Shown one piece after another: positions 1-49,590 of a stretch of DNA of 49,743 bases. The notes below the pieces were generated by a model. That model saw only the letters and a list, made by a program, of their open reading frames with translations. It was not told the origin of the DNA and searched no databases. Origin of the DNA: Macrostomum lignano (lineage: Eukaryota); assembly GCA_002269645.1 (NCBI GenBank), contig NIVC01002028.1, forward strand, positions 1-49,743. Reading direction: 5' to 3'. The translations under genes and the position numbers were made by a program. Numbering within the stretch: position 1 is the stretch's first letter; every line of letters starts with the position of its first letter.

Positions 1-1470
1 TGATACATTCAGATGGACAGAATGATACATTCAGATGGACAGAATGACACATTCAGATGGACAGAATGATACATTCAGATGGACAGAATGATACATTCAG
101 ATGGACAGAATGACACATTCAGAATGGACAGAATGACACATTCAGATGGTCAGAATGATACATTCAGATGGTCAGAATGACACATTCAGATGGACAGAAT
201 CACACATTCAGATTGACAGAATGACACATTCAGATTGACACATTCAGATGGACAGAATCACACATTCAGATTGACAGAATGACACATTCAGATTGACACA
301 TTCAGATGGACAGAATGATACATTCAGATGGACAGAATGACACATTCAGATGGACAGACTGACACATTCAGATGGTCAGATTAATACATTCAGATTGACA
401 CATTCAGATTGACAGAATGACACATTCAGATTGACACATTCAGATGGACAGAATGATACATTCAGATTGACAGAATGATACATTCAGATGGACAGAATGA
501 CACATTCAGATGGACAGACTGACACATTCAGATGGTCAGAATGATACATTTCAGATGGACACATTCAGATTGACAGAATGACACTTCAGATTGACACATT
601 CAGATTGACAGAATGACACATTCAGATTGACAGCATGACACATTCAGATTGACAGCATGACACATTCACTTGTTCAGATTGACACATTCAGATTGACAGC
701 ATGACACATTCAGAACAGAATGACACATTACTTGTCACAAATGACACATTAGGGAAGACAGAATGACACATTAGGAAGACAGAATGACACATTAGGGAAG
801 ACAGAATGACACATTAGGGAAGACATAATGACACATTAGGGAAGACAGAATGACACATTAGGGAAGACAGAATGACACATTAGGGAAGACAGAATGACAC
901 ATTAGGGAAGACAGAATGACACATTAGGGAAGACAGAATGACACATTAGGGAAGACAGAATGACACATTAGGGAAGACAGAATGACACATTAGGGAAGAC
1001 AGAATGACACGGGAAGACAGAATGACACATTAGGGAAGACAGAATGACACAGGGAAGACATAATGACACATTAGGGAAGACAGAATGACACAGGGAAGAC
1101 AGAATGACACAGGGAAGACAGAATGACACATTAGGGAAGACATAATGACACATTAGGGAAGACAGAATGACACATTAGGGAAGACATAATGACACATTAG
1201 GGAAGACAGAATGACACATTAGGGAAGACAGAATGACACAGGGAAGACAGAATGACACATTAGGGAAGACATAATGACACATTAGGGAAGACAGAATGAC
1301 ACATTAGGGAAGACAGAATGACACAGGGAAGACAGAATGACACATTAGGGAAGACAGAATGACACAGGGAAGACAGAATGACACATTAGGGAAGACAGAA
1401 TGACACATTAGGGAAGACAGAATGACACATTAGGGAAGACAGAATGACACAGGGAAGACAGAATGACACA
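1..1470. repeat. ~22-bp minisatellite with two sub-arrays (TGACACATTCAGATGGACAGAA, then TGACACATTAGGGAAGACAGAA from ~740)
   Basis: Directly visible tandem units; the array runs off the left edge of the window. Confidence 0.97.
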
Positions 1471-3744: not shown

Positions 3745-3775
3745 GTCAGAAAGACAGACAGGCAGGCAGACACTA

Positions 3776-3808
<33 letters not shown>

Positions 3809-5135
3809 CTAAGACATGCAGACACTAAGACAGGCAGACACTAGGACAGGCAGACACTAAGACAGGCAGACACTAAGACAGGCAGACACTAAGACAGACA
3901 GACACTAAGACAGGAAGACAAGAAGGCAGACAGACACTAAGACAGGCAGACACTAAGACGGGCAGACACTAAGACAGACAGACACTAAGACAGGAAGACA
4001 AGAAGGCAGACAGACACTAAGACAGACAGACACTAAGACAGGAAGACAAGAAGGCAGGCAGACACTAAGACAGGCAGACACTAAGACAGGAAGACACTAA
4101 GACATGCAGACACTAAGACAGACAGACACTAAGACAGGCAGACACTAAGACAGGAAGACACTAAGACATGCAGACACTAAGACAGGCAGACACTAAGACA
4201 GGCAGACACTAAGATAGGCAGACACTAAGGCAGACAGACACTAAGACAGGCAGACACTAAGACAGGAAGACACTAAGACATGCAGACACTAAGACAGGCA
4301 GACACTAAGACAGGCAGACACTAAGACAGGAAGACACTAAGACATGCAGACACTAAGACAGGCAGACACTAAGACAGGAAGACACTAAGACAGGCAGACA
4401 CTAAGACAGGCAGACACTAAGGCAGACAGACACTAAGGCAGACAGACACTAAGACAGGCAGACACTAAGACAGGAAGACAAGAAGGCAGGCAGACACTAA
4501 GACAGGCAGACACTAAGACAGGAAGACACTAAGACATGCAGACACTAAGACAGACAGACACTAAGACAGGCAGACACTAAGACAGGAAGACACTAAGACA
4601 TGCAGACACTAAGACAGGCAGACACTAAGACAGGCAGACACTAAGATAGGCAGACACTAAGGCAGACAGACACTAAGACAGGCAGACACTAAGACAGGCA
4701 GACACTAAGACAGGAAGACACTAAGACATGCAGACACTAAGACAGGCAGACACTAAGACAGGCAGACACTAAGACAGGAAGACACTAAGACATGCAGACA
4801 CTAAGACAGGCAGACACTAAGGCAGACAGACACTAAGACAGGCAGACACTAAGACAGGAAGACACTAAGACATGCAGACACTAAGACAGGCAGACACTAA
4901 GACAGGAAGACACTAAGACAGGAAGACACTAAGACATGCAGACACTAAGACAGGCAGACACTAAGACAGGCAGACACTAAGACAGGAAGACACTAAGGCA
5001 GACAGACACTAAGACAGGCAGACACTAAGACAGGAAGACACTAAGACATGCAGACACTAAGACAGGCAGACACTAAGACAGGCAGACACTAAGACAGGAA
5101 GACAAGAAGGCAGGCAGACACTAAGACAGACAGAC
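3745..5135. repeat. 16-bp minisatellite (AGACACTAAGACAGGC)n
   Basis: More than 80 tandem units, with variants (GGAA, ATGC). Confidence 0.97.
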
Positions 5136-5155
5136 ATATCAGAAGCACAGCTTAC

Positions 5156-10579: not shown

Positions 10580-10584
10580 ATCTT

Positions 10585-11480
10585 CTACAGTGTCTTTAGT
10601 ATCTAAAGTATCTACAGCGTCTACAGTGTCTACAGTGTCTACAGTGTCTTCTAGCGTCTAGCGCGTCTAGTCTACAGCGTCTACAGTGTCTACAGTGTCT
10701 ACAGTGTCTACAGTCTACATCTACAGTGTCTACTACAGTGTCTACAGTGTCTACAGTGTCTACAGTGTCTACAGTGTCTACAGTGTCTACAGTGTCTACA
10801 GTGTCTACAGTCTACAGTGTCTACAGTGTCTACAGTGTCTACAGTGTCTACAGTGTCTACAGTGTCTACAGTGTCTACAGTGTCTACAGTGTCTACAGTG
10901 TCTACAGTGTCTACAGTGTCTACAGTGTCTACAGTGTCTCAGTGTCTACAGTGTCTACAGTGTCTACAGTGTCTACAGTGTCTACAGTGTCTACAGTGTC
11001 TACAGTGTCTACAGTGTCTACAGTGTCTACAGTGTCTACAGTGTCTACAGTGTCTACAGTGTCTACAGTGTCTACAGTGTCTACAGTGTCTACAGTGTCT
11101 ACAGTGTCTACAGTGTCTACAGTGTCTACAGTGTCTACAGTGTCTACAGTGTCTACAGTGTCTACAGTGTCTACAGTGTCTACAGTGTCTACAGTGTCTA
11201 CAGTGTCTACAGTGTCTACAGTGTCTACAGTGTCTACAGTGTCTACAGTGTCTACAGTGTCTACAGTGTCTACAGTGTTTACAGTGTCTACAGTGTCTAC
11301 AGCGTCTACAGTGTCTACAGTGTCTACAGTGTCTACAGTGTCTACAGTGTCTACAGTGTCTACAGTGTCTACAGTGTCTACAGTGTCTACAGTGTCTACA
11401 GTGTCTACAGTGTCTACAGTGTCTACAGTGTCTACAGTGTTTGCAGTGTCTACAGTGTCTACAGTGTCTACAGTGTCTAC
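10585..11480. repeat. 9-bp tandem repeat (GTCTACAGT)n, ~99 copies
   Basis: Direct observation; begins just after the stop codon at 10579. Confidence 0.98.
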
Positions 11481-11964
11481 GGTTACAACATCTGATAGCG
11501 CCACCGGTAACTGACAGCTGAGTCTAAAGAAGTCATTGCCGAAGATAAATTCAATATTAATGAAGCAGACGGAAGTCTGAGAGATAGTTTTGCATGGGAA
11601 TCATTGAAGATAGCTGGCGAAATTTGTGAATTTTCACATAGGTTTAAGCTTCAAGCATACTTTATTACTTTCACAAGAAGGATGTATTCAGTAAGGCATG
11701 ACTCATACAGTAGGAATTCGTGGAGTTCCTATTGTACTCAAACAGCTGGCCCATTTCTGCTCTATGCATTCGGTATAATTTAAATATCATAGCGTCCGTT
11801 GGTGCACTGACTAATTCGCTTGAGTATAACTTATTTTCTATCTCATCTAACGTGCATTACAACGAAAAATAAAGTGATACTTATCTGCTCTTTCCCATAA
11901 ATTCATTTGCTCATAATGATACCTATGACTGCTATCTGAAGCCTTAGATTCAGCCCTACATTGT

Positions 11965-12728
11965 TACCTGAACCCTTTGATTCAACCCTCCATTGCCACC
12001 TGAATCCTTTGATTCAACCCTCCATTGCTACCTGAACCCTTTGATTCAACCCTCCATTGCTACCTGAACCCTTTGATTCAACCCTCCATTGCTACCTGAA
12101 CCCTTTGATTCAACCCTCCATTGCTATCTGAACCCTTTGATTCAACCCTCCATTGCTACCTGAACCCTTTGATTCAACCCTCCATTGCTATCTGAACCCT
12201 TTGATTCTACCCTTCATTGCTATCTGAACCCTTTGATTTAACTCTCCATTGCTACCTGAACCCTTTGATTCAACCCTCCATTGTTACCTGAACCCTTTTT
12301 ATTAGAGGCAGGGGGGTTGTGTGCACCCTGGCGCACTTTAAGCGACATAGGCACACAACCGGCGAGAGGCATTACTGCCCATTCCGCCGACTCCCCTGAG
12401 CAGGCATACAAGCGCGCGGATACGTACGCAGGCACACACTCACACAGGAGTGTACAGCGGCCCTAACTTTATATTATCGTTAGGCATGTACACTTCACTG
12501 CGCCTTGGGGGGTTGGCTCTCAAGGCCGTTAATTGCACGAGCAGAGCCAAGCTGAGATTCCAATTCAGCCCCAAATTAATGTGACTGCACTTGGAATCGA
12601 GCCTGGGTTGCTGGCACACCAGAGCCTGCGCTAGACCGCTGGGCTACGCCCCCCCCCTACCTGAACCCTTTGATTCAACCCTCCATTGCCACCTGAACCC
12701 TTTAATTCAACCCTCCATTGCTACCTGA
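11965..12728. repeat. 32-bp minisatellite (TACCTGAACCCTTTGATTCAACCCTCCATTGC)n interrupted by a SINE
   Basis: About 10 units before 12298 and 2 units after 12658. Confidence 0.95.
12299..12657 (-). mobile_element. tRNA-derived SINE family B, full length, 14-bp TSD
   Basis: The minus strand has A box TAGCCCAGCGG and B box GGCTCGATTCC, a 3' stem GGTTGTGTGC/GCACACAACC (12315-12360) and an A-rich tail. It is flanked by TACCTGAACCCTTT at 12285-12298 and 12658-12671. A second copy is at 47193-47460. Confidence 0.85.
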
Positions 12729-13243: not shown

Positions 13244-16200
13244 ATGAACAATCAAGAAACTTATCATCAGACTCCCTTCATCATGAATAGCTCGCAAGCA
13301 ATCGCAGTTTTCCTCAGAGTTGTCGAACTGCTCCGAGGATTTGGCAAGCTGTTGCTGAAGCATCGGGCGACTGTGGTGCTGATCCTTGTGCCGCTGGCTT
13401 TGCTTCCGTTGCTTCTTTGCTTTGACAGTCTGGTAAGTGAATCAAGCTTTAGACCGATTGGGTTGTGCTGCAATATGCTTTAAATTGCTATCAACCTGTT
13501 TATCCAACAGGTATCCAAGGCAGCCTACATCATTCTACTAATGTCATTCTACTGGAACTTTGAAGTGGTCCCTCTAGGAGTGACCGCCTTGCTGCCTGTG
13601 GTGCTGTCACCTCTGCTCGGCATTATGTCCAGTAGTGAAATATGTCCCAGCTACTTCAAGGTAAGTTTTTGTTTAAATAACACATTATTCAACTTCAAGA
13701 GTTTAAGGTAATCCAAGGTACCCATTGAAGAGCAACTTGTGCACACATTTTGCAGGACTCGAATATGCTTTTTCTCGGCGGTCTAATTATGGCTGTATCC
13801 ATCGAGGCCTGGGATTTGCACAAGAGGATTGCCTTGAAAGTTCTTTTACTCTGCGGCGTCCAGCCCAGGTGGTAAGCACCTACAGTACTTGCTCGTATGT
13901 GATAAGGGATGTATTTTAAAACATGGCTGTTTTGAACAAGCTTGAGCATAATTCGCATACTCCAGGCTCCTCTTCGGACTGCTTGCTCCGGCCTGGGTTC
14001 TTTCGATGTGGATCTCGAACACGGCCACGGTAGCTATGATGCTGCCTATTGTGGAAGCTGTGCTATCCGAGCTGCGGTGTCAGCATATGCGGCAAAAACG
14101 TCGCAAAGAGTCGGTGGTGTCAGAAACAGCACCCAGTGTCCTTTCATCCTCCGTATCCACCGTTTCTGATGAAAACTCCGGAGAGAATCCTGACGGTGAT
14201 CTGTCAAGCCCAGCGGTGAAAATACAAATCCCACCGCTGCCACCAGACGATGTGGAAGATGAGGATCCAAAGAAAGACTCTATCGAAGACGACAATGACG
14301 ATAATAACGATGGAATAATCCGTCGATGCCTTTGAAAGAATACCTGGCTGAGGAGAGCAACGCAGAGTTTGCTAGCACGTGCCGGATGCTGCTGCTGGGC
14401 GTCTCCTACGGTTCTGTTTTTGGTGGCGTCGTCACTCTGACGGGAACGGCTCCGAACGTTATCTTGAATGGGATTGTTCAAGAGTACTACGGATCCAACA
14501 CGGGGCTCAACTACTGCAGTTGGATGCTGTTTGCCTTGCCATTGGGCGCCGTAGGCCTTTTGCTGACCTGGGTCTGGCTTCAGATCAGCTTTCTTGGCTT
14601 TCGGTGAGAGAAGGACGACTTTTGTGCCTCTTTTACGTGTCTTACGTATTATCAAAATTGAGCCTTCTCTTCTAAATCTGGATTTTAATTCAGCAGGTTT
14701 AAATCCTAGTATTAATAGTTTATAGCCACTCAGTTGGAATCCGATATTTATTTTAACGCGTTATCAAAAAACTGGAAGCTAGACGAACCAGACCAGATGA
14801 TGATTGTTAATCTGTGAGACTCAATCTCAAAAATCCTTTATCATAAGGATCATACAGACTCAAACTTTGATTATACGTAGACATGATGTAAAGATATTCA
14901 TTCGTAATTGAAAGTAATTTATAGTCACGAGTCTTCCATGGCTCTCTTCATAATCAGCAACAATCAACACATGTACTCCAAACTCCTCCCAGCAATATAA
15001 TTCTGCATCCTTATCCGTTTAACGTCTAACTGTCTTTTAAGTGGTTTAAGCGATCGCCGTACTGAGAAAGCAGACATATGATACTATCAGACACGTCGTA
15101 CAAGATATTTAGCATCTTGGGTAGAAATTGTAAGTAGGATCTCTTAAATTGGGAAAAATTTTGAAACTATAGCAAGCAACCTTAATCATAGGTTTTGCAT
15201 AGAAAAGCCATTCAAAAATTTAATACCAAAATAGTTTAAAAACGTGTCCAGAACCCAAGGAATTTTAGGTTTTCTTCTAGGAAAGCGTGTAAAACGCAGG
15301 CAAAACTAAAAGTGAGTTTTTGGCAAGATTAGACGTAAGGCTCTCCTGTTATTGGTCGCTACAAATGCGGAATTCTTTGGTCTTGTAGACACTTAAGGAA
15401 CATCGCAGCGTTTAATTTTACTTTTACTTTTGGGCCCAAGCTGCGCAAAAAATAAAAAATGCATTTTTTTCGATTAGGCTACTTTTGCCGGGCTGATAAT
15501 TACTTCAACTATCATTAGCTGTTGGTAATGTAATTGTGATGCTTTTCCTTATCACTTCGCATACACTGCAATTTCAGCGGCTTGGCCAAAGCCGGCGACT
15601 CGGTCGCAATCGCCGACGCTCGACTGACCCGCGCAGCTCTCCAGCGGCAGTACAAGCAGCTCGGTCGCTGAGCTACGCTGAGGCAAGCGTGCTGGCTATT
15701 TTTGGCCTCACTATCATCCTGTGGATCTCGCGACAGCCTGGAGCTCCGGGTTGGTCGTCGTTGTTTATGAAAGCGCCAACCTCGGATTCTGAGGATGAAG
15801 CACCAGTCAGTCTGATGAGTGACGCGCAGCCGGCCGTGCTGGCCGTCTTGCTGCTCTTCCTGCTACCCTCGCGGAATCCGTTCGCGAACCTGTTCAAGGC
15901 TGTAAGAAGAAAACCAGTTTCCAATGAGACGACAGTGGAGCACTGCAGTCAGCAGCAGTCTGACTTTGAATTTAAAGCCGATGCTGATGCAGCTGGAGAA
16001 GATTGTCGGCAATGGCGTACCAAGCCGAGTCGGCTGCTGAGCTGGGACCTGGTGCAGAAGCGGGTGGCCTGGCAGATTGTACTCATGCTGGGTGCCGGCT
16101 TCGCACTGGCCGACCTGTCCAGAGTGAGTTCATTTGTAAAGCCTCTAGTTGTGAACTTACTGACATGGCAAATGTTTCTCCTCATAATGTCTCGACAAGC

Positions 16201-17211
16201 AAACAGTTTAAGTTTGAGTCCCATGGTATAATCACCCCTTCTTTGGCCCAGCGTTTCACCTGATCCGTGCTCTAGTAAATGCGCAAATCAAGCGATACTC
16301 GATCTTCCGCACTACTCAGGTGTCCGGCCTGTCCGACTGGATCGGCAGCCAGCTGGTTGCGTTGAAGTCCGTGCCAGCCCCGGCTCTCATCTTCATCATC
16401 TGCTGGTGCTCCGCCCTGCTCACCGAGTTGACCTCTAACGGTACAGCTGCCACGATCCTGCTGCCCATCTTGGCCAGTCTGGTGAGTCCGCGTCCGCCTA
16501 GAGATTCGGTTTTTGCTATTAACTCGATTTATCAATAATCAACCACATTCAGTGACTTTCAGTGACTTTCAGTAATATTCAGTGACATTCAGTGACATTC
16601 AGTGACATTAAATGACACTCAATGACATTCAGTGACATTCAGTGACTTTCAGTGACTTTCAGTGACTTTCAGTGACTTTCAGTGACTTTCAGTGACTTTC
16701 AGTGACTTTCAGTGACTTTCAGTGACTTTCAGTGACTTTCAGTGACTTTCAGTGACTTTCAGTGACTTTCAGTAATATTCAGTGACATTCAGTGACATTC
16801 AGTGACTTTCAGTGACTTTCAGTGACATTCAGTCACCGAAATGTTTTAGAGCGAGCGACTGCAGCGACACCCGTTCCAGCTCATGCTGTCTAGCGCCGCT
16901 TCCAGCTCTTTTGCATTCATTTTGCCGATCTCGACACCAGCAAACATACTGGTCTATTCGAGGGGCTACCTGCGGCCGTGGGATATGGTAAGGCTTTGGA
17001 TAACACTGCGTCTCTGTTGCATTGAAAGCATCCATATATTAACTATGGCAAGGTAAAACAATCGTGAATTTATTCGTTGCAGCTTCGCACCGGCTGCATC
17101 ATGTGGCTGCTCTCGAACGCTTTGGCGGCCGGGGCCTCTCTCTGCTATGCGCCGGCAATTTTCGGCATCAACGGTTTTCCGGACTGGGCCAGGAGGAATG
17201 CAACTTATTGA
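13244..17211 (+). CDS. SLC13: SLC13 family Na+-coupled dicarboxylate/citrate/sulfate symporter (DASS), 8 exons, two apparent -1 frameshifts
   Basis: Exons 13244(or 13283)-13432, 13511-13660, 13756-13871, 13966-14603, 15578-16123, 16320-16481, 16850-16987, 17083-17211; all GT-AG with compatible phases. Motifs [59 protein letters not shown]. One base must be restored at ~14311-14320 and at ~15668. Confidence 0.93.
16548..16832. repeat. 10-bp tandem repeat (CAGTGACTTT/CAGTGACATT)n in SLC13 intron 6
   Basis: Direct observation. Confidence 0.96.
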
Positions 17212-17840
17212 CGGTTGCTTAAGCTCACATTACATGCTCTAAACTTATTTTTAATCATTCCTAACTCATTGTATCATATTCACTGATATTCATTGGCCCT
17301 TTACTTATAAAGTTGCTTCATCATGTATGCTATGAGTTAGACCTGAGTCGTATCCTTTCGAACTCTTAATCCAGAACAGGCTCGCTATTCATATTTGAAG
17401 CAACACTGAAATTTCCCTGTAAAAAATTAATAAACACATTGATCAACACAATAATAAAAAGAATTTTAAGGAAACATTAGCCAGATATTGAGCAGTGGGA
17501 ATTTCGGTTCTGCTTCGAGTAAAAAAATATTCGAAATTAGATTCCGTTCATCATTTGGGTTATTGAAAGCCAAGACGTATACAATAAAAAATAAAATATT
17601 CTTTTCTACTGACAGTAGCATAGCCTGGATATTTGTGAAATACACTAATTCTGTACATTCTGTATGTACGTCCAATACGTACAATAACGCTGTACATTTC
17701 AAGCTTTAATAAAAGCCCAAATTTTGCTGCTTCAAAGAAAAAATTATTAACCAGAAATAGCTTTCCTTTTTAAGCAAATTTTGCCTTAACTTTTACTGCC
17801 GTCTTAGTAGACATTGCGAAAGAAGATTGAAAACCAAAGA

Positions 17841-19734
17841 ATGCAGGCATCTGGAAGTGGCTCGGATCTCCCAGCAGATCGGAAAATTATTCTTGCCATT
17901 GCACAGGGAGACAAGGCATTCGTGGAGAATCTCTTGACAAGAGGAATGACGGCCGACAAGCTGCTCATATCAGCATCCGGTGTCCCGTTCTCGCCACTGC
18001 AGGCTGCCTGCATCACTGGACAGACGGCTGTTACTGAGCTGCTAATCGCATCGAAAGCCGACGTCAATTATCAGGATCAGGACGGACGAACTCCAGTCTA
18101 CCTGGCATCGATGCAGGGCCATCATCAAGTCGTTGATCTTTTAGTAGAAGCGAGAGCAGACGTAAATCTGGTAACAAATTCCGGCACATCAGCGCTCTAC
18201 ATTGCAGCTCAGGCTAATCATTACAAGGCAGTGAAATCGCTGATCAGCGCCAAAGCCGATGTCAATCACGCAATAAAAAATGGCGCGACACCGCTGTACA
18301 TCGCGTCGCAAAAAGGTCACCACCGGGTTGTTGAATTGCTCCTCAAGCAGGACGTCAACGTTGACTGTCAGATTAACGAAGGCGCCACACCACTGTACAG
18401 CGCTGTTCAGAATGGCCACTTGAAAGTAGCGCGGTTGCTGCTGCAAGCGCAGGCAGACGTCAACTTGCAAGCCAACACTGGGGCAACACCTCTATCTATC
18501 GCCTCGTACTTTGATCGCAGAGAAATAATGACCCTACTCATTAAAGCGCAAGCTGAAGTTGACCTTCAGCTGAGTACTGGTGAATCGCCACTATATTTGG
18601 CCTCTCAGAATGGCCACCGTCAAACTATGCAACTGCTGATTGGAGCAATGGCCGATGTGAATTTGGGAACGACAATGGGCGAGACGCCTATTTACGCTGC
18701 ATCTTTCAATCCCGGGCTTGAAACGGTGAGCCAACTCATCCAAGCCGGAGCCGACGTCAATTGCCATACCAAATCGGGCGAGTCACCTCTTTTCGTTGCT
18801 TCTCTGCGCGGTCACCGTCAAATTGTGGACTGCCTTATCAAAGCGAACGCAGACGTAAATTTTCGAAACAGAAAAGGTGACTCGCCTCTCTATATCGCAT
18901 CGCAGAACGGACACAATGACATTGTCAAGCTGCTTATTAAATCGAAAGCGGAAGTCAACCAACAAACATGTCTTGGGGCCTCGCCAATGTATATTGCGTG
19001 TCAGAATGGACACCAGAGAGTGGTAGCCTCGCTTATCAAAGCACAGGCAGACGTTGACGCTCCGAGAGCATCTGGGAGTCCCCACTTTTGATCGCCTCCT
19101 GCAACGGTCATCATCAAGTGATTGACCTGCTCATCAAAGCGCAAGCTGACATCAATCAACAGGACAACCTTGGAGGGTCGCCTTTGTACATTGCCTCACA
19201 GAAAGGGTTCCACCAGGTGGTGGCTGCACTTCTCAAAGCACAAGCAGATGTTGATATTCAGCAAATAAATGGCGGCTCGCCCATTTACATTGCGTCGCAA
19301 CTAGGCCGTCATGCTGTGTTTAGTTTGCTCCTAAAAGCGCAAGCAAGTGTTAATCTGCAAACTGACACGGGGCTGTCTCCGCTCTTTATTGCGTCACAGA
19401 ATGGTTACCATGAGCTGGTTGACTCTCTCATAGACGCTCAAGCTGACGTCAATGTCAAAGACTCCGAAGGCTGCACGCCAATCTACATCGCGTCGCAGAA
19501 CGGTCACTATGGCGTGGTGTTGTCCCTCGTCAGAGCTCATGCTGACGTTGAAGCAAGAACTGTTACTGGTGAGACTCCCCTTCTAATTGCAAGCGTCAAT
19601 GGACATCACCGAGTTGCTGCCTTGCTGGAACAAACTATTCAGACACAATATGAATCACCGTTTCTTGAGTCTGAGACAGAAAAGGCTAAGCATCAACTTA
19701 CTCATCAGGATCGTGCGGCTTTGTCAGAGTCAGA
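17841..19734 (+). other. Ankyrin repeat region (~18 x 33 aa) of the ANK-cGLR gene
   Basis: Repeats of G.(T/S)PL(Y/F)IASQNGH..VV.LL..A.ADVN in ORFs 17814-19091 and 19088-19738. The two ORFs are continuous if one G is restored (SGESPLLIASCNGH). Confidence 0.95.
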
Positions 19735-22714
19735 GTAAGAGTTCGAATTTGAGTTTTTATATTAAAATAGAGCGACGTTGTACATAAAATGAAATAGAGC
19801 CCCCTAATTTTCGAATCCAAATGGCATTTAGAAGTGCTTCTCAAAGCGGTTTGTTGAAGTATTTAGTTGTTTCGCTGGCTACGCGGCTTCAGCTTAGTGT
19901 AATTGCTGCCGTCAACATGCATGCGTGGGCATTACGCTCGTACTAGGGCGGAAGAAGCACTGGAGCTACTAAAAGCAACATAAAAAAATTCTCATTAGGC
20001 TGTTGAAGAAAGTTCTCTATTTGCAATTTTACTTTGTACACGATCATTTCGCCAACTGACCGAGAATACGCACTGTTTGCTGTTGCAAGTGTACATTTCC
20101 AGTTCTAGAACTCCAACCTCTGTCCCTCTTGTGCGTGATCTATGCACAATGTGCTCTTTTTAGTGTACGATGATTTCTCTCCTTCTAGACATTTTTCTCT
20201 CTGGTTTTAATCTGTATTTTTCCAAAAGCTCAATTATGTCTTTCTATCTCGCTCTATGCATTCGCTCATCTTTTAGCTCGGTTAATTTTGTCTTCCTCGT
20301 CATTGTCCTTTTTATAGTTTAGGAATGAAACGATGCCCGATGCATTAAAGCAACTAATGCAAAAAATGAACTTTATAAAATGAAAGAGACAATCAAATAG
20401 CAAAATTAGTAGACTGAACGGGACGGAAAGTGGGGAATGGAAACGCTACGAGTAGTATGTGGTCAGAATGCAATAAATAAAATATTTTCTTCAGGTCGAT
20501 GCCGAGTGAATTGGAACTCAGTCTGCTGCTTCAATCGACGCTTACAAAAGCCGGATTTGTTAAAGCCAGAGCCGCCTTGCAGGCTGCAGTTGCCGACGCA
20601 TTGCAGGGAATTTTGCGAAGCAGGAGAGACTCATTCCCAGGGATCTATATTGTCGGCAGCTACTCAGAGGGCTGGGGCAACAGCCTGACCAAAGCGGACG
20701 GGAGAACGGACGCGGAGTCTGACATTGACGTGATGAAGCTGTTTCAGGGTCGACTCTACCACATCAGAGGTAGTTGCCAATGCTGCGATCGAAAAGAAAA
20801 GGAGCTGGTCGACTGCAAGGATGGTCATATTCGAATTGGGGGCTTTGGTAAGCAGCTGTTTATTAAATTGGAATATCATAAGGGTCTCGGCGTCATAGGC
20901 ATTATCGCGGAGGTCTTTTCATATAACAGGACTATGCTCAGTCTGGATTCACGCTTAAAGCCGCAGTGTAGGCCCAATCTGTGAAAGCAATGCTTATGGT
21001 ACTCGTACCAACTCGCATGCACAGGAAGTAATAACCAGGCCAGAGTTTTTTAATCAGCACACAAGTAGACATAATTCAGTTTGTGCGACTGACTCTCTGT
21101 GCTTTTGCTCCAGTACCATATTGTACCAAACAGTTCACTAAATCTAATTTGTTATCCAATTGTTCAGTTAAAAAGTTCCAATATGAAAGCATGATCTCAT
21201 AAAAGCTTATAAGACATTTAATAATCTTTATCGTTAAAACAGCAACCAATCCGGCAAAGGCCTCAAGTGGCACACCATTGAGACCTGCAGTAGATGAAGT
21301 TGACGCATGCCGCGTCTGCTGCTATCCGCCAATCGCTCCGCTGCTGCCGCACCGAATCTCTAGCTCAAATATTTCTCCGTCCGTTCTGAATACACTTCAA
21401 AGCGAGCTCAGCAAGTCACCCTGTCACGTGGTGCACGCGGCACCACCTAGACAAGCGGGAAAGCAGCTTCGTGTCAGCACAACTTTCCTGGAGAAACTGC
21501 TGCTAAGAGGTCTCAGCACGTTACAGGGCCAGCTATTCGTCACTCTGAAGTACTTGGTTAAGAAAGTAATTTGCCGCAAAGACGGCTACAATTTCGAGGG
21601 GCTAAAAGCATATCACGCAAAGACAATCACTTTCAGAATGTTGGAGGAGACGCCGGCTGAGGAATGGAGACCGCAGAATTTCGTGAGTCTAATAAGACGA
21701 TCGCTGCAGATGCTTCTTGACAGCATCGAACAAAACTGCACGGTGGACAATGTGGATGGTCGAATCATGGAGCACTTTTTCCTGTGCAACGCTGGTTTGT
21801 ACTTGAAGGGCTTGGGTCCGAGCCATGCCGGTGCAATGACACAAACAATTCAAAGTGCTATGAATGTTTTGAGGGATGTAATTGAAAAGCTGCCGCAGAT
21901 CTTGCTGAAATTTCAAAGAACGCTTCGACCGGTCAACGAATCGGGCGTATTTTACTTTCACCCTTTTCAAATTCTACCGGAACTGAGACTTCAATCCATT
22001 CAGACAGAAAACCCAGAGCTTGAGTATCACGAGATCTATGATGTAGTGGGATGGTCACTGCTTCAATTATCTCAGCAGCGGATATCTGAATCGCCAGATT
22101 CCCGACAGACGCTCATGCAAATGATTGACAGGCTCCCGGACTGCGCTCGGACAGCTCGCGAGGCTCTCAGGGCGATGATCTGTCTAAAATTCGACGATAG
22201 AGATGGAGCACAAAAGGTTTTGAGTGCCTGTAGGCGGCACAAAGTGAGCAGAGGAATAACCTGGTCTGCGGAGAACTTAGCAATTGAAGCAACAGAGGAA
22301 GACGTGCGGCAGTATTTGCTTAGCGTTGACTCGGCATGGAAATTCTGCTTCCGATTTGATCAACGCCCCGAGCTGCCATTTCTACCTAAAGTCATTGCAG
22401 AGTACTTTCCATTTGACGTTGACAGCTACACTCAAAATGCGGTCTTCTATGTCAATTTCGACGCACTGCTGCAGAGTCTAAGACTTCTGCTGACACCCGA
22501 TGACGTAAGCGTTAGACACTGGTTCCAAGAGGTGTCTTGGAGTGAAAGCGCCGACATTCAGGAACTCGCAGTGTGCGCCGCCTTCTGCGACGACTCCAAC
22601 CTGGTGCAGATATTCGTGGAGAAACTGCAGCGTCAGCCAGTTCTCAATCGTCTGCAACAGGAGCTGAGAATTAAATTGCAAGTTTTTGCTTTGCTTCCGT
22701 GTTTGCAGTCATAG
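17841..22714 (+). CDS. cGLR: Ankyrin-repeat + cGAS/Mab-21-like nucleotidyltransferase (ANK-cGLR) fusion protein, 3 coding exons, ~1239 aa
   Basis: Exon 17841-19734 (about 18 ANK repeats, -1 frameshift at GGG 19074-19076) ends GA|gtaaga (phase 2). Exon 20495-20847 starts ttcttcag|G TCG ATG CCG (phase 2) and ends TTT G|gtaag (phase 1). Exon 21243-22714 starts aaacag|CA ACC (phase 1). NTase motifs: GS (20655-20660), DID (20721-20729), third acidic residue in VDEVDA (21293). Mab-21-type LRVSTTFLEKLL, LKYL, LKAYHAKTITFRMLE..W and MEHFFL. Confidence 0.8.
20495..22714 (+). other. cGAS/DncV-like (Mab-21 family) nucleotidyltransferase region, split by intron 20848-21242
   Basis: IYIVGSYSEGWGN...ESDIDVM and a Mab-21 C-terminal helical signature, recognised from ORFs 20499-20984 and 21278-22714. 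Confidence 0.88.
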
Positions 22715-23147
22715 TATAATCTATTGATTTTGTAGTTTTGAAAACGTAATTAACTAAACGTTACAACTAATTTCTATTTTTTATTTTAGATTTGGAGTTG
22801 GTCTATAGCTGGCAGCGGACACCGCACTACCTGCCGAAGGTCTATTGTAAACCAGTAACCGTTTTTAACAAACAGATTTTCCCGACTTTCTTCGTTGCTA
22901 CAGGAGCTTTAGACACTACTTGAAGTAGATAAAAGTTAAAAGACTGGAAATCAATAGGCAAAAGTCTATAAAATATTTGTTTTGCTATTAGCTCGGAGCC
23001 TAGCGTAAGCGCATTGTATGAACACTTATGTCCGGTCCGCAACTGATGTCATTATTCGACACTATTTTTTTCATTATTCCACACTTATTCGCGGTCATTA
23101 ATCCACAATATTCTATCATGCTTTAATTGGCTGTTTTGAGTTATATT

Positions 23148-23385
23148 ACCATAGACAACTGTGATGTATGTCTTAGTTTGACCATAGACAACTGTGACGT
23201 GTGTCTTAGTTTGACCATAGACAACTGTGATGTGTGTCTTAGTTTGACCATAGACAACTGTGATGTGTGTCTTAGTTTGACCATAGACAACTGTGATGTG
23301 TGTCTTAGTTTGACCATAGACAACTGTGATGTGTGTCTTGGTTTGACCATAGACAACTGTGACGTGTGTCTTGGTTTGACCATGG
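23148..23385. repeat. 33-bp minisatellite (TTGACCATAGACAACTGTGATGTGTGTCTTAGT)n, ~7 copies
   Basis: Direct observation. Confidence 0.96.
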
Positions 23386-23494
23386 AAAACACTGTGATAT
23401 CAATAAATATTATAGCATTTTTCAAGCCAATTGAGCCTAGGAGCAAGCAATTTAATCCTTAGTGGGAAAATCAATCTATTGAAGAATTGCTTTT

Positions 23495-32471: not shown

Positions 32472-35083
32472 TCAGATCATTCCCGTCTGTTGCTGCAGTT
32501 GCTGTGGCACCAGCGAATTGTCAGCCACTTCAGCGCAGCCTTCCGATGCTTTGCTCACCTTTTTCCTGTGCCGCTTCAGCAAGCAAAGTTCCAGTAGTTC
32601 AACGGCAAAGGCGCAGGTCAGACCCAGAGTGAGACTGCTCAGGCCGCCAACTTGACTCATCAGCGCGCTGAAGCTCAGCGACAGCGTCTCCGTTTTCTGG
32701 ATGGTGTTCCGTGTCTGCCTCCGCACGGTGATGTATGCGAAGTCGCGACCGCTTGGCTCCAGCACTTGCGGTCCAGATATCGCCGTGAGATTTTTCGCCG
32801 TTAGGAAGTCGCGCAGCGAGTTCTTCGCCGACTGGATTGAAGCCTCAGCTTGGCGACGCTGCTCCGACGATGCGGTCAAGTCGGCCAGTCGTTCGGAGGC
32901 CTCAGCCAAATCGCGGAAACTTTTAGCCTGAAGGGCCAACCAGTGCAGTTGCCAGTCTGCCGCACGCCAGATTGTCTTGGAGGAGACCATCTCAAAGTCG
33001 TGATAGTGGCAGGGCTTAAGGCAGTGCGTGTCGCCCAGGTTTGCTCGCAAACTCGGCAGGTTGAGTGACTGCAGACAGGCCCGACTGCGCAGCACTGGCT
33101 CCACGCCACGGCGATAGTCGCCACAATACGGATGCGTTGCATTTGGTGGAGTCTCGCGCAGAAGGTCGGCAAAGTGGCAGCCGCAGGCTTTCAGCACTAT
33201 CCTGCCGAGCTCCTGGCGCAAGCAGCCCTCCTGCGAGTAGGCAAAGTCACGTCCGAGGTCCAACACGCGACGCGATAAGGCGATGGTTTCAGGCAGGCAA
33301 GCATCAGTCGGACTGCCAACCTCGATCAGGCGCACAGGTTGGTAAGCCATCTCGACCATCTTGCCCGGCGCCACGTGAATGCCTCGGTCGGTTGGTTCGG
33401 GGAAGCGATCGTGCTCCTGCAGCTGCACACGGAAGCCGCTAGCCTGCTGGAAGGCGTCCTGCACGAAGGCCTGCTCGTGTGGATCGGCTCCGTGTTGGTG
33501 GTGGCTGTCAGTGACTCTCAGCACTACCGTAAGCGAGTCGATAGTAGGAGTGGCCTGCGATGGTTTGAGTTTCAAGCGGGAATCTAGTTGCTATGGCACA
33601 AATACCCTGACTGTGCCTGCAATAAACCGTGAACAGTGGAGCTTGAGCAATCATGGCAGTTTTTTAGGTTAAATATTTTTGTTTTCAAGTTGATAAATGG
33701 GAAAAATGACCGCCCACAATACAATCACTGTCACTCTCACCAAGCTCTTCAGCGATTAAAATTGAAGGTTCCCTAAAAATTTGGACGCGTCAGAATTTAA
33801 ATCGAACACTTCCGGTCCCGCGTCACAGCAGTCAGCTGTTGCTACATCTGGGCAGCGCTAACACAGCTCTCAGCTTTGGAATAACTATGTGCTAAATACT
33901 GAAAAATTCTTAAAATACAAAATTTTCTCTTCAAACAGGTTAACAGTGTGATTACAGGACATTTTTTTTGCTTTCAATTCAAATTGAAAGTTCAAACCTG
34001 TTCGTTACGAGGGTATCTTTGGTCAGAATAATAGGTCGTCTTTCTTCCCAATTTTGTTCGTACTAGTAATGATAATAATAATTGATTTTTTTCTGCCCTA
34101 CGAAGGTAGGGCAGGGCCCCTGCCCTAATGTCCAGATGTGCAACCGACAGCTCAGCCGCAGCTATTTGCGCGGCGCATCTAAAGGCTGCGTACGGCTGTT
34201 CAGTCCAAGGACTGGGGGGTCGCCACACACCCTCAATTACCCCAGCTAATGCTGGCACCCATTTTACAGCAGGGTAAAATTGTTTAAAGTGTCTTGCTCA
34301 AGGACACAATTTTTTCGAGTGGGGTCAAGAATCGAAACCCCGACCTTTCAATCGTGAGTCCGACGCTCTAACCACTAGGCTACAACCCGCCTAAGTCTTC
34401 CCAACTCTATTTTGTACTATAGTTAAATCAATAGTTGATTCGCACACATGCAGCACGCAGCCCTGAGTCTAAGAACAGGTCGCACCTGCACTCACCTGAA
34501 CCTGGAAGCAGTTGAAGTAGTCCGGCAGGCTGATCAACTTTAGCTGCATAGCGCAGCCGTCTCCGCTGCTCATCTCCATGAACGAGCCCGTGGCATTGAT
34601 GCAGAATATAAATAGCTGCTGGGCTGTGTGGCTCAGCTTCTCTGCGTCATCCGGCTCCAGGTTCTGATAATAGACCCGCTTGGAGTCGCTGGCCAGGATC
34701 TCTTCGGCGCCAATGTGATTCCCGGCGTCGAACATCTTCAGCGCGTGGGCGCGCAGCATTCTAGAAAAATTGGTCGGCGACAGGATCTGGCCGCTCTGCC
34801 AGAGCTGGCGCCCGCTCTCTGTGAACGGATAGTGACCGCACACGGTCACCGCAGGCCAGCTCAGCCCCGGGTCGTTCAGCACAACCGTAGTCTGGATGAC
34901 CGTCCTGTAGCTCAGGTAGTCGGTAACGATAAAGCAGACGCAGGTGACTAAGAAGGCGGCCATTGCGGCCACGTAGGCGGTCCAAATGCAGCGCAACGGA
35001 CGCGTCGGCGCTTTCACAGTTTTGGCAACCCCGCGAAGCGAAGTGGCCGTGCAGAACAGCTCGAAGTCCTGGCGCAGACCCAT
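32472..35083 (-). CDS. DEG/ENaC (degenerin/ASIC/FaNaC-like) amiloride-sensitive channel subunit, 2 exons, ~568 aa
   Basis: Exon 35083-34496 (CAG|gtgag, phase 0) joins exon 33590-32472 (ccatag|CAA) in frame. Motifs: F..TSLRG (HG position), TM1, WPAVTVC, YFNCF, Cys-rich thumb (YSQEGC..C.C..C..PC) and TM2 MSQVGGLSSLTLGLTCAFAVE. Confidence 0.92.
34119..34389 (-). mobile_element. CORE-SINE family A copy in the DEG/ENaC intron
   Basis: Reverse complement of the A box/B box head plus the CORE-like GTGTCCTTGAGCAAGACACTT...CTGTAAAATGGG. Confidence 0.9.
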
Positions 35084-35829
35084 AGTGGGTCAAAGTTTTC
35101 CTGTCTTCACCCCGCCGGGACTTTGAAGTGTGATTCAGCAAAAAGATTGTAACAGAGCTGAAATATAAGCGAAGAGAGATTCTTCACACGAGGGTCACGG
35201 TGGGGCGGTCGCTCTGCTGTAGGACCAATGGCGGCTCCCTTGCGTAAAAATATCGATATAGAGGAGCATTAGCATTGGTCAGAGGAAGTGAAGGATCATC
35301 TGCTTTTTTATATACTTTAGACTTGGGCAGCGCAGCTGAGGGCAGAGGTTGATGGCAGCAATTAATTAAAGCCCAGAACCACGCTGCCACAATGTCAGTC
35401 GTGTTAGGGACCGCAAGCGTCAGCTCCCAAATAATTTATTTTAGCACTGACAAGACAGATTGCGTGCTTGAACCGCGACAACGGGGGCTGGAAGGGAGCA
35501 GAGAGTCCCAACTCTCAAACCAGCTGACCGCTTAGTCAGCCAACTACTGCAGTTGTCAGCACTAGATTGCTGGGGTAGTCGGGCTGGATAGAACTCGCAA
35601 CGAATTCTGCGAGTCTTACTCAAAAAAAGCTTCTATGTTGGCCTTAAACTTTTCTAAGATTGTTCTCGTCTCACTACTATTCGATCGCGAAGTAGCGAAC
35701 CGAGTTTCAAAATGCTCAAAACGGTAACGTTTGTTTGCCTGAGGTATTCCAAAATGTACAACTTATTTTAACGAACTGTAGTGTTACTTTACGTATTTTA
35801 AATAAGTGAAAACTTTATTTTCACCTATG

Positions 35830-36631
<802 letters not shown>

Positions 36632-39450: not shown

Positions 39451-42400
39451 GGTCGCAAACAGCCGCCCACAGCAGCCAGAGATGAGCCTCAGAGTTCGCC
39501 CCAGCGTCAAGTGAAGAAACAGGCGACGAAATCCGTCTTACAAGATTCTCCATCTAAGTTGCGGCGAGGGCAAAGCTCCAGGTAAGTCTGTGGGTGACAC
39601 AGGCTGGGGGAGACACAGGCTGGGGGTGACACAGGCTGGGGGTGACAGAGGCTGGGGGTGACACAGGCTGGGGGAGACACAGGCTGGGGGTGACACAGGC
39701 TGGGGGAGACACAGGCTGGGGGTGACACAGGCTGGGGGTGACAGAGGCTGGGGGTGACACAGGCTGGGGGAGACACAGGCTGGGGGTGACACAGGCTGGG
39801 GGTGACAGAGGCTGGGGTGACACAGGCTGTGGGTGACACAGGCTGGGGGCGAAACAGGCTGGGGGTGACACAGGCTGGGGGTGACACAGGTTGGGAGTGA
39901 CACAGGCTGTGGGTGACACAGGCTGGGGGTGACACAGGCTGGGGTGACACAGGCTGGGGGAGACACAGGATGGGGCTGACACAGGCTGGGGGTGACACAG
40001 CCTCTTACACGCAATTTCACTAGCCGTCGCAAGAAACTAGAGTTGAGCAGGCTGTACTTTAAGTGTACTTCTCACACCCCACGCTGCAGGACGGAAGTCG
40101 TGCTAGACCAGGCTGTGTGCAGAATCGAAGTCCTGGAGAGAGACGCTGACAGCATCAGATCAACTCTGACCGTAAGCCGGGAGCAAGACGCAGATAGTTT
40201 TTCTTGAGAGCCCATTAGCTTGAGGCGCTGGGGCCAGGAGGACAGCAAGATGCGATAGTGGCAGCGGCTGGGGCTGCCGACGCCCGTGATTAATTGCTCG
40301 AATCTGGCGCGATACTTTTTTACTCCCCCCTCCGCCCTGGTCACTTCGCCATCAATGCTGGGCTTTGATCTTCGCCGCCGACTAGACAACGGTTGACAAC
40401 GGGGAAGTCGAGGGCAGACTGGCTTGTATTTTTCTGCTTTTATTGGAGCCGACAAAGTGAAAGTGCTTGTGCTACAGATAAGAGTAAGGCGGCTGTCAAC
40501 TGCTGGGCCACCGACATCACTGAACCTAGCGCAAGTGTGCCGATTGTTTCCCTGACAGAGAATTTTGCAGATTCTTTCATGCTTATATTTTTGTTCCGTC
40601 TCGCCTATAGGTTTTTATCTCTAGTCTTTTGTCTCCCATATCCCATGTCAGATATCTAATCTCACACATCCAGAGGCCAATTCTGATATCTAGTCTCACA
40701 GATTTCAACTCCCAACTCCCATCTCAGATCTCTAATCTCCCAGGTTCCATCGCCCAGTTCAAATATCTAATCTCACAGATTCTAGATCCCATCTCCTATT
40801 ATCTAATCTCGCCGATTTGATCACCCAGCTACTCATCTCCGATATCTAATCTCACAGATTCCATCTCCGATCACCAATATCTAATCACACAGATTCCATT
40901 TTTCATCGTCATATCTAATCTGAAAGATTCTAGATTCCATTTCCTATTATCTAATCTCACAGGTTCCAATCCCAGCTCAGATATCTAATAGCACATTTCA
41001 CAGATTCCATTTTTCATCATCATATCTAATCTCACAGATTCCAGATCCCATCTCCGATATCTAATCTCACAGATTCCAGATCCCATCTCTGATATCTAAT
41101 CTCACAGATTCCAGATTCCATCTCCGATATCTAATCTCACAGATATCTAATAGCACATTTCACAGATTCCATTTTTCATCATCATATCTAATCTCACACA
41201 TTCCATATCCCATCTCTGAAATCCCATCTCAATCTTGCTAAAGAGTTCAGCCGATCCAGAAATATCTCAATGACATCGCAGAGAAGAGAACTGAAATCAG
41301 ACAGCCAAGAACTCAATCTATCAGTCGAACAGTGGAACAGAAACAGAAAGCGCCGGGATGAAAATAGAGAGCCAGCTGAAGAGCTGGGAAGTCGAATATC
41401 GATCTTTAATTCAGAAATGAGAGACGGCAGCAGCAGAGCTGCATAAAGTCCGTTGGGAATGAGCGTCAGGGGGGGGGGAGTGGCGGAGAAGCAGGCAGTG
41501 ATGAGAGTCGAAGATTTCTCCCATCTAGTTAAGCGCATGTATTACACTGGGTACAGGCAGAGTTCCTTCAGCGTACCAACTACTGCTATGCCCTCCCGCT
41601 GTTCGGGAATTCAGATACTTAGAAGAACTTCTATCTGAAGTAGAGAATTACAGCTGGGGAAAGTTTGAAAGTTAAAGACTTCTAATCACCAATGGAGGAG
41701 TTTTTATCTATGATATAATATCTTCGTTAAACTTCACCCCAGCCCAGCCAATCGCAGGCCGAGAGCGGAGCTGTTCGGTTATTTTTCTAACATTTTATTT
41801 TTCTATATTTCAAAACTTAGGGGAATCATATAGTTTTCTGTGAAATTAAATTACGCCTATTTCTCTACCTACTTGCTTCAGTAGCAATGAACGAGTTTTT
41901 TATCTTTAATTTGAGAACTTTTCTTTATGCTCAAAATTTTACGTCGTCGAATTACTAGTGCAGGTGTAGAAAAAATACTAAACTAAAGACTATTTAATTG
42001 GAGTTAAATTGAAGGAGCAGAAGGAGCAGTAAGTGGGCGCAGGGCCCAAACCGATATATTTATAGAACATTTAACTTTGGGGGGTTGAGCCCAGAATAAT
42101 AAAGAGAGGGGGTGGAGTGCGCGACTGAGGAAAGAGGCGAGAACGGAGAGCCAATCAGAACGCAGCAAGGGAGAGAGAGATAAGAATAACAAGATTGAGC
42201 TAGACAGAGAGAGAAAACGGAGTAAACAGAGACAAGTGAAGGTGAACTAAGAAATGACTAGGAAAGTCGCGACACCCCCGAGTACCAATAGAATTATGAA
42301 TTAGAGTTCAAGAAACAACTTTAAAGCAAATTTAACAATGGTGTACAAATTCGACTAAGAATTTCAATACAAAACCTGTGGAGACTAGAGTGAATGCAAA

Positions 42401-44917: not shown

Positions 44918-45431
44918 CACAGTGGGAGATGACACAGTGGGAGATGACACAGTGGGAGATGACACAGTGGGAGATGACACAGTGGGAGATGACACAGTGG
45001 GAGATGACACAGTGGGAGATGACACAGTGGGAGATGACACAGTGGGAGATGACACAGTGGGAGATGACACAGTGGGAGATGACACAGTGGGAGATGACAC
45101 AGTGGGAGATGACACAGTGGGAGATGACACAGTGGGAGATGACACAGTGGGAGATGACACAGTGGGAGATGACACAGTGGGAGATGACACAGTGGGAGAT
45201 GACACAGTGGGAGATGACACAGTGGGAGATGACACAGTGGGAGATGACACAGTGGGAGATGACACAGTGGGAGATGACACAGTGGGAGATGACACAGTGG
45301 GAGATGACACAGTGGGAGATGACACAGTGGGAGATGACACAGTGGGAGATGACACAGTGGGAGATGACACAGTGGGAGATGACACAGTGAGAGATGACAC
45401 AGTGGGAGATGACACAGTGGGAGATGACACA
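44909..45431. repeat. 15-bp tandem repeat (GGGAGATGACACAGT)n, ~35 copies
   Basis: Nearly perfect units. Confidence 0.98.
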
Positions 45432-48982: not shown

Positions 48983-49590
48983 GAGCTGTCCAATTCAATG
49001 GCTTTTTATTAACTTGATTGGCTGTATTGTCTATGGCCGAGTGCAGTTCTGTGGCAGTGGCTTCTGTTGCGAGCTGTCCAATTCATTGGCTTTTTATTAA
49101 CTTGATTGGCTGTATTGTCCATGGCGAGTGCAGTTCTGTGCAGTGGCTTCTGTTGCGAGCTGTCCAATTCATTGGCTTTTTATTAACTTGATTGGCTGTA
49201 TTGTCTATGGCCGAGTGCAGTTCTGCGGCAGTGGCTGCCATTGCGAGCTGTCCAATTCATTGGCTTTTTATTAACTTGATTGGCTGTATTGTCTATGGCC
49301 GAGTGCAGTTCTGCGGCAGTGGCTGCCATTGCGAGCTGTCCAATTCAATGGCTTTTTATTAACTTGATTGGCTGTATTGTCTATGGCCGAGTGCAGTTCT
49401 TTGGCAGTGGCTTCTGTTGCGAGCTGTCCAATTCATAGGCTTTTTATTAACTTGATTGGCTGTATTGTCTATGGCCGAGTGCAGTTCTGCGGCAGTGGCT
49501 GCCATTGCGAGCTGTCCAAATCATTGGCTTTTTATTAACTTGATTGGCTGTATTGTCTATGGCCGAGTGCAGTTCTGCGGCAGTGGCTTC
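48983..49590. repeat. 88-bp tandem repeat, ~7 copies
   Basis: Units start at 48983, 49071, 49157, 49245, 49333, 49421 and 49509. Confidence 0.96.

Follow-up and report, generated by a model that had tools for sequence, protein, structure and literature searches.

Gene content and exon–intron structure

The DNA analysed here is a 49,743-nt stretch from the flatworm Macrostomum lignano (the window), whose plus strand carries a gene predicted to encode a long array of ankyrin (ANK) repeats followed by an enzyme core related to cGAS and the cGAS-like receptors (cGLRs). By sequence, this gene is a copy of the already annotated M. lignano gene Mlig004324, with four exons. The full reading developed below, namely that the window holds a frameshifted copy of Mlig004324 which encodes an ANK-cGLR, belongs to a large expansion found almost only in M. 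lignano, and would act through a sensor mechanism deduced from its class, is regarded as probable when its parts are taken together.

The assignment to Mlig004324 came from a cluster look-up, in which GenBank hypothetical protein PAA61490.1 (BOX15_Mlig004324g1, 1233 aa, Macrostomum lignano) was found in one of the 90% clusters of relatives of the window core. Its locus lies on contig NIVC01002028.1 (hereafter L002) of assembly GCA_002269645.1, and the nucleotide identity to the window is 98–99%. PAA61490.1 matched the two frame pieces of the window gene at 408/411 and 812/820 residues (~99% protein identity), the first piece corresponding to its residues 1–411 and the second also containing its residues 413–632, and both products begin at the same Met. 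Moreover, P0046, a fragment spanning the second exon junction, differed from the window product by one residue. A literature search with the locus name Mlig004324 returned no mention.

Four long plus-strand frames cover the gene in the list of open reading frames: 17814–19091 and 19088–19738, both composed of ankyrin repeats, 20499–20984, and 21278–22714. Exon 1 (17841–19734) starts with the ATG at 17841 and encodes an N-terminal cap, 17 ankyrin repeats and an acidic linker of ~35 aa, with a -1 frameshift inside the array. Intron 1 (19735–20494, 760 nt, GT..AG, phase 2) lies between the ankyrin exon and the enzyme core, the first part of which is encoded by exon 2 (20495–20847), comprising an N-terminal spine helix and the first half of the nucleotidyltransferase with its GS (20655–20660) and D-I-D (20721–20729) motifs. 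After intron 2 (20848–21242, 395 nt, GT..AG, phase 1), exon 3 (21243–22677) supplies the third Asp (21293–21295), the Mab-21 helical lobe and, from 22013, the C-terminal domain. Intron 3 (22678–22789, 112 nt, GC..AG, donor aaatt/gcaagt, the slash marking the splice site) was taken from the public transcript-based model and leads to a terminal micro-exon (22790–22808), whose five codons encode (L)FGVGL before the stop TAG at 22806–22808. Splicing of intron 3 yields a C-terminus ending in ...RIKLFGVGL, and its retention would extend the open reading frame to a stop at 22712–22714, with the ending ...RIKLQVFALLPCLQS. An earlier note on this DNA had overlooked this GC-AG intron and placed the end of the gene at 22714, although the long C-terminal extension that it described is present, with a length of ~230 aa.

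That note had also proposed that the apparent stop of the ankyrin frame overlaps a splice donor, and that two introns join the array to the two halves of the enzyme; both introns are borne out. The donor of intron 1, GA/GTAAGA at 19734/19735, overlaps the GAG TAA stop and meets the acceptor ttcttcag/G TCG ATG at 20495, and the donor of intron 2, G/GTAAGC at 20847/20848, meets aaaacag/CA at 21243, with the frame kept across both joins. PAA61490.1 reads ...SESE/SMPSELE... at junction 1 and ...GGF/ATNPAK... at junction 2, and GF/ATNPAK also spans junction 2 in homologs. All three introns are common to the window gene and the PAA61490.1 model, the equivalent of intron 1 in L002 being ~760 nt long. 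Furthermore, a paralog with ~53% identity (P0003) has introns at both homologous positions and in the same phases, its exon after intron 1 likewise starting with 'G TCG'. Because the junctions are in phase, the introns are conserved in P0003 and the transcript-based PAA61490.1 crosses both junctions, the ankyrin array and the cGAS-like nucleotidyltransferase are likely joined by splicing on one polypeptide, a view that the sequence data support. The gene models of Mlig_3_7, the public assembly that holds PAA61490.1, derive solely from transcript data, namely RNA-seq (StringTie/TACO) and a de novo transcriptome, together with TransDecoder (PMC5730564), and the reading of PAA61490.1 through both junctions is indirect RNA support for the fusion. 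The splice-fused architecture claimed by the earlier note is therefore supported, but it is not 'hidden' as that note had it, being already in GenBank and of a published class.

The genes on either side are common to the window and L002. Upstream lie the exons of a Na/sulfate (SLC13-type) symporter (15536–16538, plus strand), and downstream lies an amiloride-sensitive sodium channel gene (ASC/ENaC-type, 32472–35083, minus strand), both in agreement with the Pfam calls on the public contig. A tandem paralog inside the window was considered and rejected, as tblastn gave one copy only. Satellite and tandem arrays are unusually abundant in the window (1–1451, 3763–5136, 10584–11480, 11930–12298, 35829–36630, 39588–40000, 44908–45431 and 48983–49588), with units of 22, 16, 9, 32, 4, 16, 15 and 88 bp and up to 200 copies, and many spurious long open reading frames arise from them. 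This repeat richness is consistent with the high simple-repeat content reported for M. lignano. In addition, a 33-bp tandem repeat (23148–23390, 7.4 copies, 96% matches) begins ~340 bp 3' of the terminal exon, and a 33-bp repeat also follows the third copy of the 3' half of the gene on the public contig.

Ankyrin array, enzyme core and family

In the array, the N-terminal cap is followed by 17 ankyrin repeats, each of 33 aa and all in perfect register, a number close to the ~18 counted in the earlier note, and Pfam Ank_2 matched its two pieces with E=1.6e-108 and 1.8e-43. For the core, the Pfam scan returned no match to Mab-21 (PF03281), and Mab-21_C (~21542–21832) scored 22.9 bits, under its cut-off of 24.1, which several paralogs passed. 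Used as a single query in phmmer, the 607-aa non-ankyrin part matched no PDB sequence. A profile from full-length homologs was discarded, since it was swamped by ankyrin proteins, and was remade from a trimmed core alignment; this family profile matched mouse cGAS (E=4e-6), the matched segment being confined to the SYH.KT...W...NL helix in the helical lobe.

The non-ankyrin part (607 aa) was modelled with AlphaFold2 from 25 family sequences, and the model reached a predicted local distance difference test (pLDDT) score of 85.3 and a predicted template modelling (pTM) score of 0.87. In a Foldseek search of this model against the PDB, the matches fell on its first ~390 residues, and the top 50 were all cGAS (human, mouse and pig), Cv-cGLR1 (8gjw), Sp-cGLR1 (8gjy) or MAB21L1 (5eom), with a probability of 1.00 and target-normalised TM scores of 0.46–0.59. 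The modelled fold supports assignment of the core to the cGAS/cGLR/MAB21L1 type, that is, a bilobal pol-beta-type nucleotidyltransferase with a helical lobe. The Mab-21/cGAS identity suggested by the earlier note is thus upheld by AlphaFold2 and Foldseek, but not by Pfam.

The catalytic residues described previously were also recovered intact, as G54-S55, D76-I-D78 and D135 in the numbering of the 607-aa part. None of these five residues varies among nine paralogs, the most distant of which has 43% identity, and in the model the GS loop follows beta1, D76 and D78 lie on beta2, and D135 lies on an adjacent strand. cGLRs have been defined as cGAS homologs with complete active sites, 87% of them being stand-alone enzymes and ankyrin and TPR fusions being minor architectures (Fig. 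1C, S2A; Li et al. 2023, 10.1101/2023.02.22.529553). The predicted core displays those defining cGLR features that can be assessed in silico. With the characterised enzymes (human, mouse and pig cGAS, Cv-cGLR1, Sp-cGLR1 and Drosophila cGLR1), it shares the bilobal fold, the catalytic triad and the SYH.KT...W...NL helix, whereas identity over the structural alignments is 11–16% and the window protein has additional N- and C-terminal domains. MAB21L1/2 (5eom) has the same fold, but the triad is intact and invariant only on the side of the window family.

Several His and Cys residues of the core (window 20760–20830, 21317–21319 and 21422–21427) are conserved as well: H89, C94, H111, C143, C178 and H179 are invariant in the nine paralogs and C96 is found in 8/9 (607-aa numbering). 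To judge from this conservation, they possibly form a structural metal site. The zinc thumb of cGAS is located after the third Asp; unlike it, the residues of the window core stand before and around the third Asp. The isoelectric point (pI) of the core is 9.0, compared with 5.95 for the ankyrin array and 4.9 for the acidic C-terminal domain. Core charge was also considered as an indicator of nucleic-acid binding but was not decisive, the paralog cores having pI values between 6.1 and 9.1.

The C-terminal extension of ~230 aa (residues 375–607, window 22013–22711) is conserved across the family. Modelled alone, it was predicted with a pLDDT of 83.6 as a mostly helical domain with a small sheet. 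It had no Pfam match, and searching the model against the PDB gave no match at E<0.001, the best hit (E=0.47) belonging to generic helical-repeat noise.

A word-indexed protein search with the 607-aa non-ankyrin part found 37 clusters, and an exhaustive HMMER scan found 166 representatives at E<1e-3, 70 of them at E<1e-30. The relatives that were looked up are all from M. lignano, except one UniParc-only entry and one contig of a JGI metagenome. These sequence searches show the ANK-cGLR family as a large expansion almost confined to M. lignano. Ankyrin repeats were detected in all nine relatives that were domain-scanned (9/9) and are also present in many annotated matches of the protein search. 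A different domain order was seen in P0076 (PAA59752.1, 1099 aa), in which a cGLR-family core (2–547) is followed by ankyrin repeats and a Peptidase_C14 caspase domain (872–1094, 89.9 bits); P0192 (PAA80948.1, 1444 aa), in the same 90% cluster, is likewise named a caspase-domain protein. P0076 is either a real sensor-protease fusion or a read-through of two neighbouring genes in the transcript-based model.

The class itself is known. M. lignano PAA proteins with Ank_2 are included in Table S2 of Li et al., and five M. lignano cGLRs (PAA86972.1, PAA45980.1, PAA57558.1, PAA93208.1 and PAA68676.1) were part of the 140-enzyme screen of that study, as constructs that begin after the ankyrin array (10.1101/2023.02.22.529553). 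These five share the GS(F/Y)(A/S)E(A/G)WGNSL and D-x-D signatures with the window protein, and the ANK-cGLR fusions of that catalogue (for example those of Stylophora pistillata and M. lignano PAA86972.1, PAA45980.1 and PAA68676.1) likewise combine ankyrin repeats with a complete-site cGLR core. The window protein differs from the catalogued fusions in its longer array of 17 repeats, and the Macrostomum clade differs from other ANK-cGLR fusions in its extra, conserved C-terminal domain, for which there was no fold match. In view of the GenBank entry and the published class, the finding is not new.

Frameshift and near-identical copies

Exon 1 is not one open frame in the window, as translation from 17841 halts at a TGA at 19089–19091. 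The three exons proposed by the earlier note total 3719 nt, a length not divisible by 3, so the single protein of ~1239 aa that it envisaged cannot be translated from the window as assembled. The break falls at ...APRASG/ESPLLIAS..., where one extra base is needed and after which the later repeats continue in another frame. It coincides with a G homopolymer at 19074–19076 (plus strand), where ankyrin repeat 12 begins. This run is GGG in the window and GGGG in NIVC01002028.1, a -1 frameshift; across this site PAA61490.1 reads ...APRASGESPLLIAS.... The contig of PAA61490.1 thus differs from the window gene in its GGGG and intact ankyrin exon, and also in its triplicated 3' half, copy 1 of which bears a 7-bp deletion. 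Apart from that deletion (opposite window 22550–22556), the G-run is the sole coding-exon indel between the window and copy 1.

The 3' half of the gene occurs three times on L002 (9174–15199, 24454–28210 and 42608–46825, compared with window 19272–23086), at 97–99% identity, and once, intact, in the window. PAA61490.1 takes its exons 1–2 from copy 1 and, after a jump of 31.5 kb, the intact exon 3 of copy 3; this mapping implies that the mRNA as assembled is intact, and the public gene model is 36 kb long owing to the triplication. The triplication is either genuine, as a segmental event, or was produced in assembly by the redundancy and partial polyploidy of the genome. L003, the third of the public copies, is located at the noisy end of a contig, where 1.3 kb of its ankyrin exon contain ~20 single-base indels; it too lacks one base of the G-run, and it has the 7-bp deletion as well.

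The G-run difference either stems from an error in the homopolymer consensus or reflects a genuine lesion, carried by one of several near-identical copies. If the deletion were real, the window copy would be a pseudogene, encoding a truncated protein of ~416 residues with 11 ankyrin repeats, or nothing, with another copy being the functional one. We regard this as unlikely, while giving it more weight than the other alternatives, and it is compatible with the family assignment. In its favour, the frameshift stands in the given sequence, L003 is short by a base at the same site, and a separate 7-bp deletion affects the C-terminal domain of two public copies, so that lesions are common among the copies; moreover, the DV1 line has additional large chromosomes, as well as duplicated blocks of at least 95% identity that total 180 Mb (PMC5730564), and the copies differ by 12 non-synonymous versus 5 synonymous codons, which gives no sign of constraint, the numbers being too small to weigh. 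On the other hand, aside from the 7-bp deletion of L002 copy 1, this indel is the only one across the 3.7 kb of coding sequence, and its position in a homopolymer is typical of long-read errors; L003 is an unreliable witness because of its many single-base indels; and the mRNA-derived protein is intact at the frameshifted codon.

Proposed function and its alternatives

In line with what Li et al. (2023) inferred for the class, the window protein is a candidate nucleotide second-messenger sensor. The core would rest in an inactive state, as in characterised cGLRs, until a ligand is recognised, and once activated may make a cyclic (di)nucleotide signal. The ankyrin solenoid could bind a ligand or partner, or could hold the enzyme off by autoinhibition, and a receptor, STING or another, would read the signal in M. 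lignano. Bacterial CD-NTases of CBASS belong to the same superfamily and follow the same logic from sensor enzyme to nucleotide signal (10.1101/2023.02.22.529553), but none was among the 50 PDB matches listed, all of which are animal proteins, and the window gene has spliceosomal introns and a eukaryotic context.

Several points weigh against an active sensor encoded at this locus, beginning with the frameshift of the window copy as assembled and the codon differences given above, and including the sub-threshold Pfam score of the core. The 15 described active cGLRs come from insects, anemones, molluscs, hydras and corals, with no flatworm named, and 'most platyhelminthes' were found to have no cGLR besides Mab21-like proteins (10.1101/2023.02.22.529553). 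The planarian S. mediterranea is without cGAS and STING (PMC13563047), and the entries for four cestodes in Table S5 give zero cGAS and zero STING (10.1101/2023.02.22.529553). A Macrostomum STING was not found in the literature search, and no protein search for STING was made.

Part of this evidence would also suit a catalytically silent core, in which case the product would be a Mab21-like scaffold or regulatory protein that synthesises no second messenger. MAB21L1 is among the structural matches, Pfam sees Mab-21_C only, no flatworm enzyme is named among the active cGLRs, and no STING partner is documented in flatworms. We nevertheless consider a silent core improbable. The GS motif, D-x-D and third Asp are invariant across paralogs to 43% identity, whereas Mab21L1/2/3 are without a predicted functional active site, and many cGLRs appear inactive in vitro, likely since their ligand is unknown (10.1101/2023.02.22.529553); the M. 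lignano constructs that were screened were devoid of the ankyrin array.

A still smaller probability is given to two separate products, an ankyrin-only protein ending at the TAA at 19736–19738 and a cGLR-only protein from the ATG at 20499, for example through spliced-leader trans-splicing at 20495: the stop overlaps the donor, an in-frame ATG lies 4 nt past the 20495 acceptor, polycistronic, trans-spliced units make up ~7% of the transcriptional units of M. lignano (PMC5730564), MPSELE is the start of two older UniProt models (A0A1I8GSR7 and A0A1I8IYP2), and the chimeric model A0A1I8HFR6 links a different upstream exon to the same acceptor, but P0001, P0003, P0008, P0010, P0015, P0039 and P0041 have no Met just before the start of the conserved core, P0003 has the same intron in the same phase, array and core stand in one protein in each of the scanned relatives and in many annotated ones, the locus came through the TBONE pipeline, in which units are split where trans-splicing occurs, as one gene (PMC5730564), and the models starting at MPSELE are fragments from ab initio annotation of an older assembly. 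An additional cGLR-only isoform from the in-frame ATG (window 20495–20501), for example by spliced-leader trans-splicing, is conceivable.

The fused ANK-cGLR, as a candidate sensor, remains the preferred reading. A bolder and doubtful extension of it is that the M. lignano ANK-cGLR clade constitutes a self-contained, diversified repertoire that works without STING, in which the variable arrays would directly recognise pathogen proteins, the C-terminal domain would serve a regulatory or output role or provide non-STING coupling, and some members may be wired to a caspase (PAA59752.1). If true, this would give cGLR signalling a new branch, within a phylum that is otherwise believed to have lost that pathway.

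By itself Mlig004324 adds little, being in GenBank and of a published class whose close paralogs have been biochemically screened. Most flatworms are reported to be without cGLRs, and the planarian and cestodes examined are without STING, while M. lignano has dozens of ANK-cGLR genes with intact sites. With transgenesis available, M. lignano could be a tractable animal for cGLR questions, of which three arise here: what a cGLR that does not sense nucleic acid recognises, what role the ankyrin array plays, and what reads the signal if STING is absent. The interest of the finding rests in the expansion restricted to M. lignano, the fold-orphan C-terminal domain and the question of the receptor, more than in the Mlig004324 locus.

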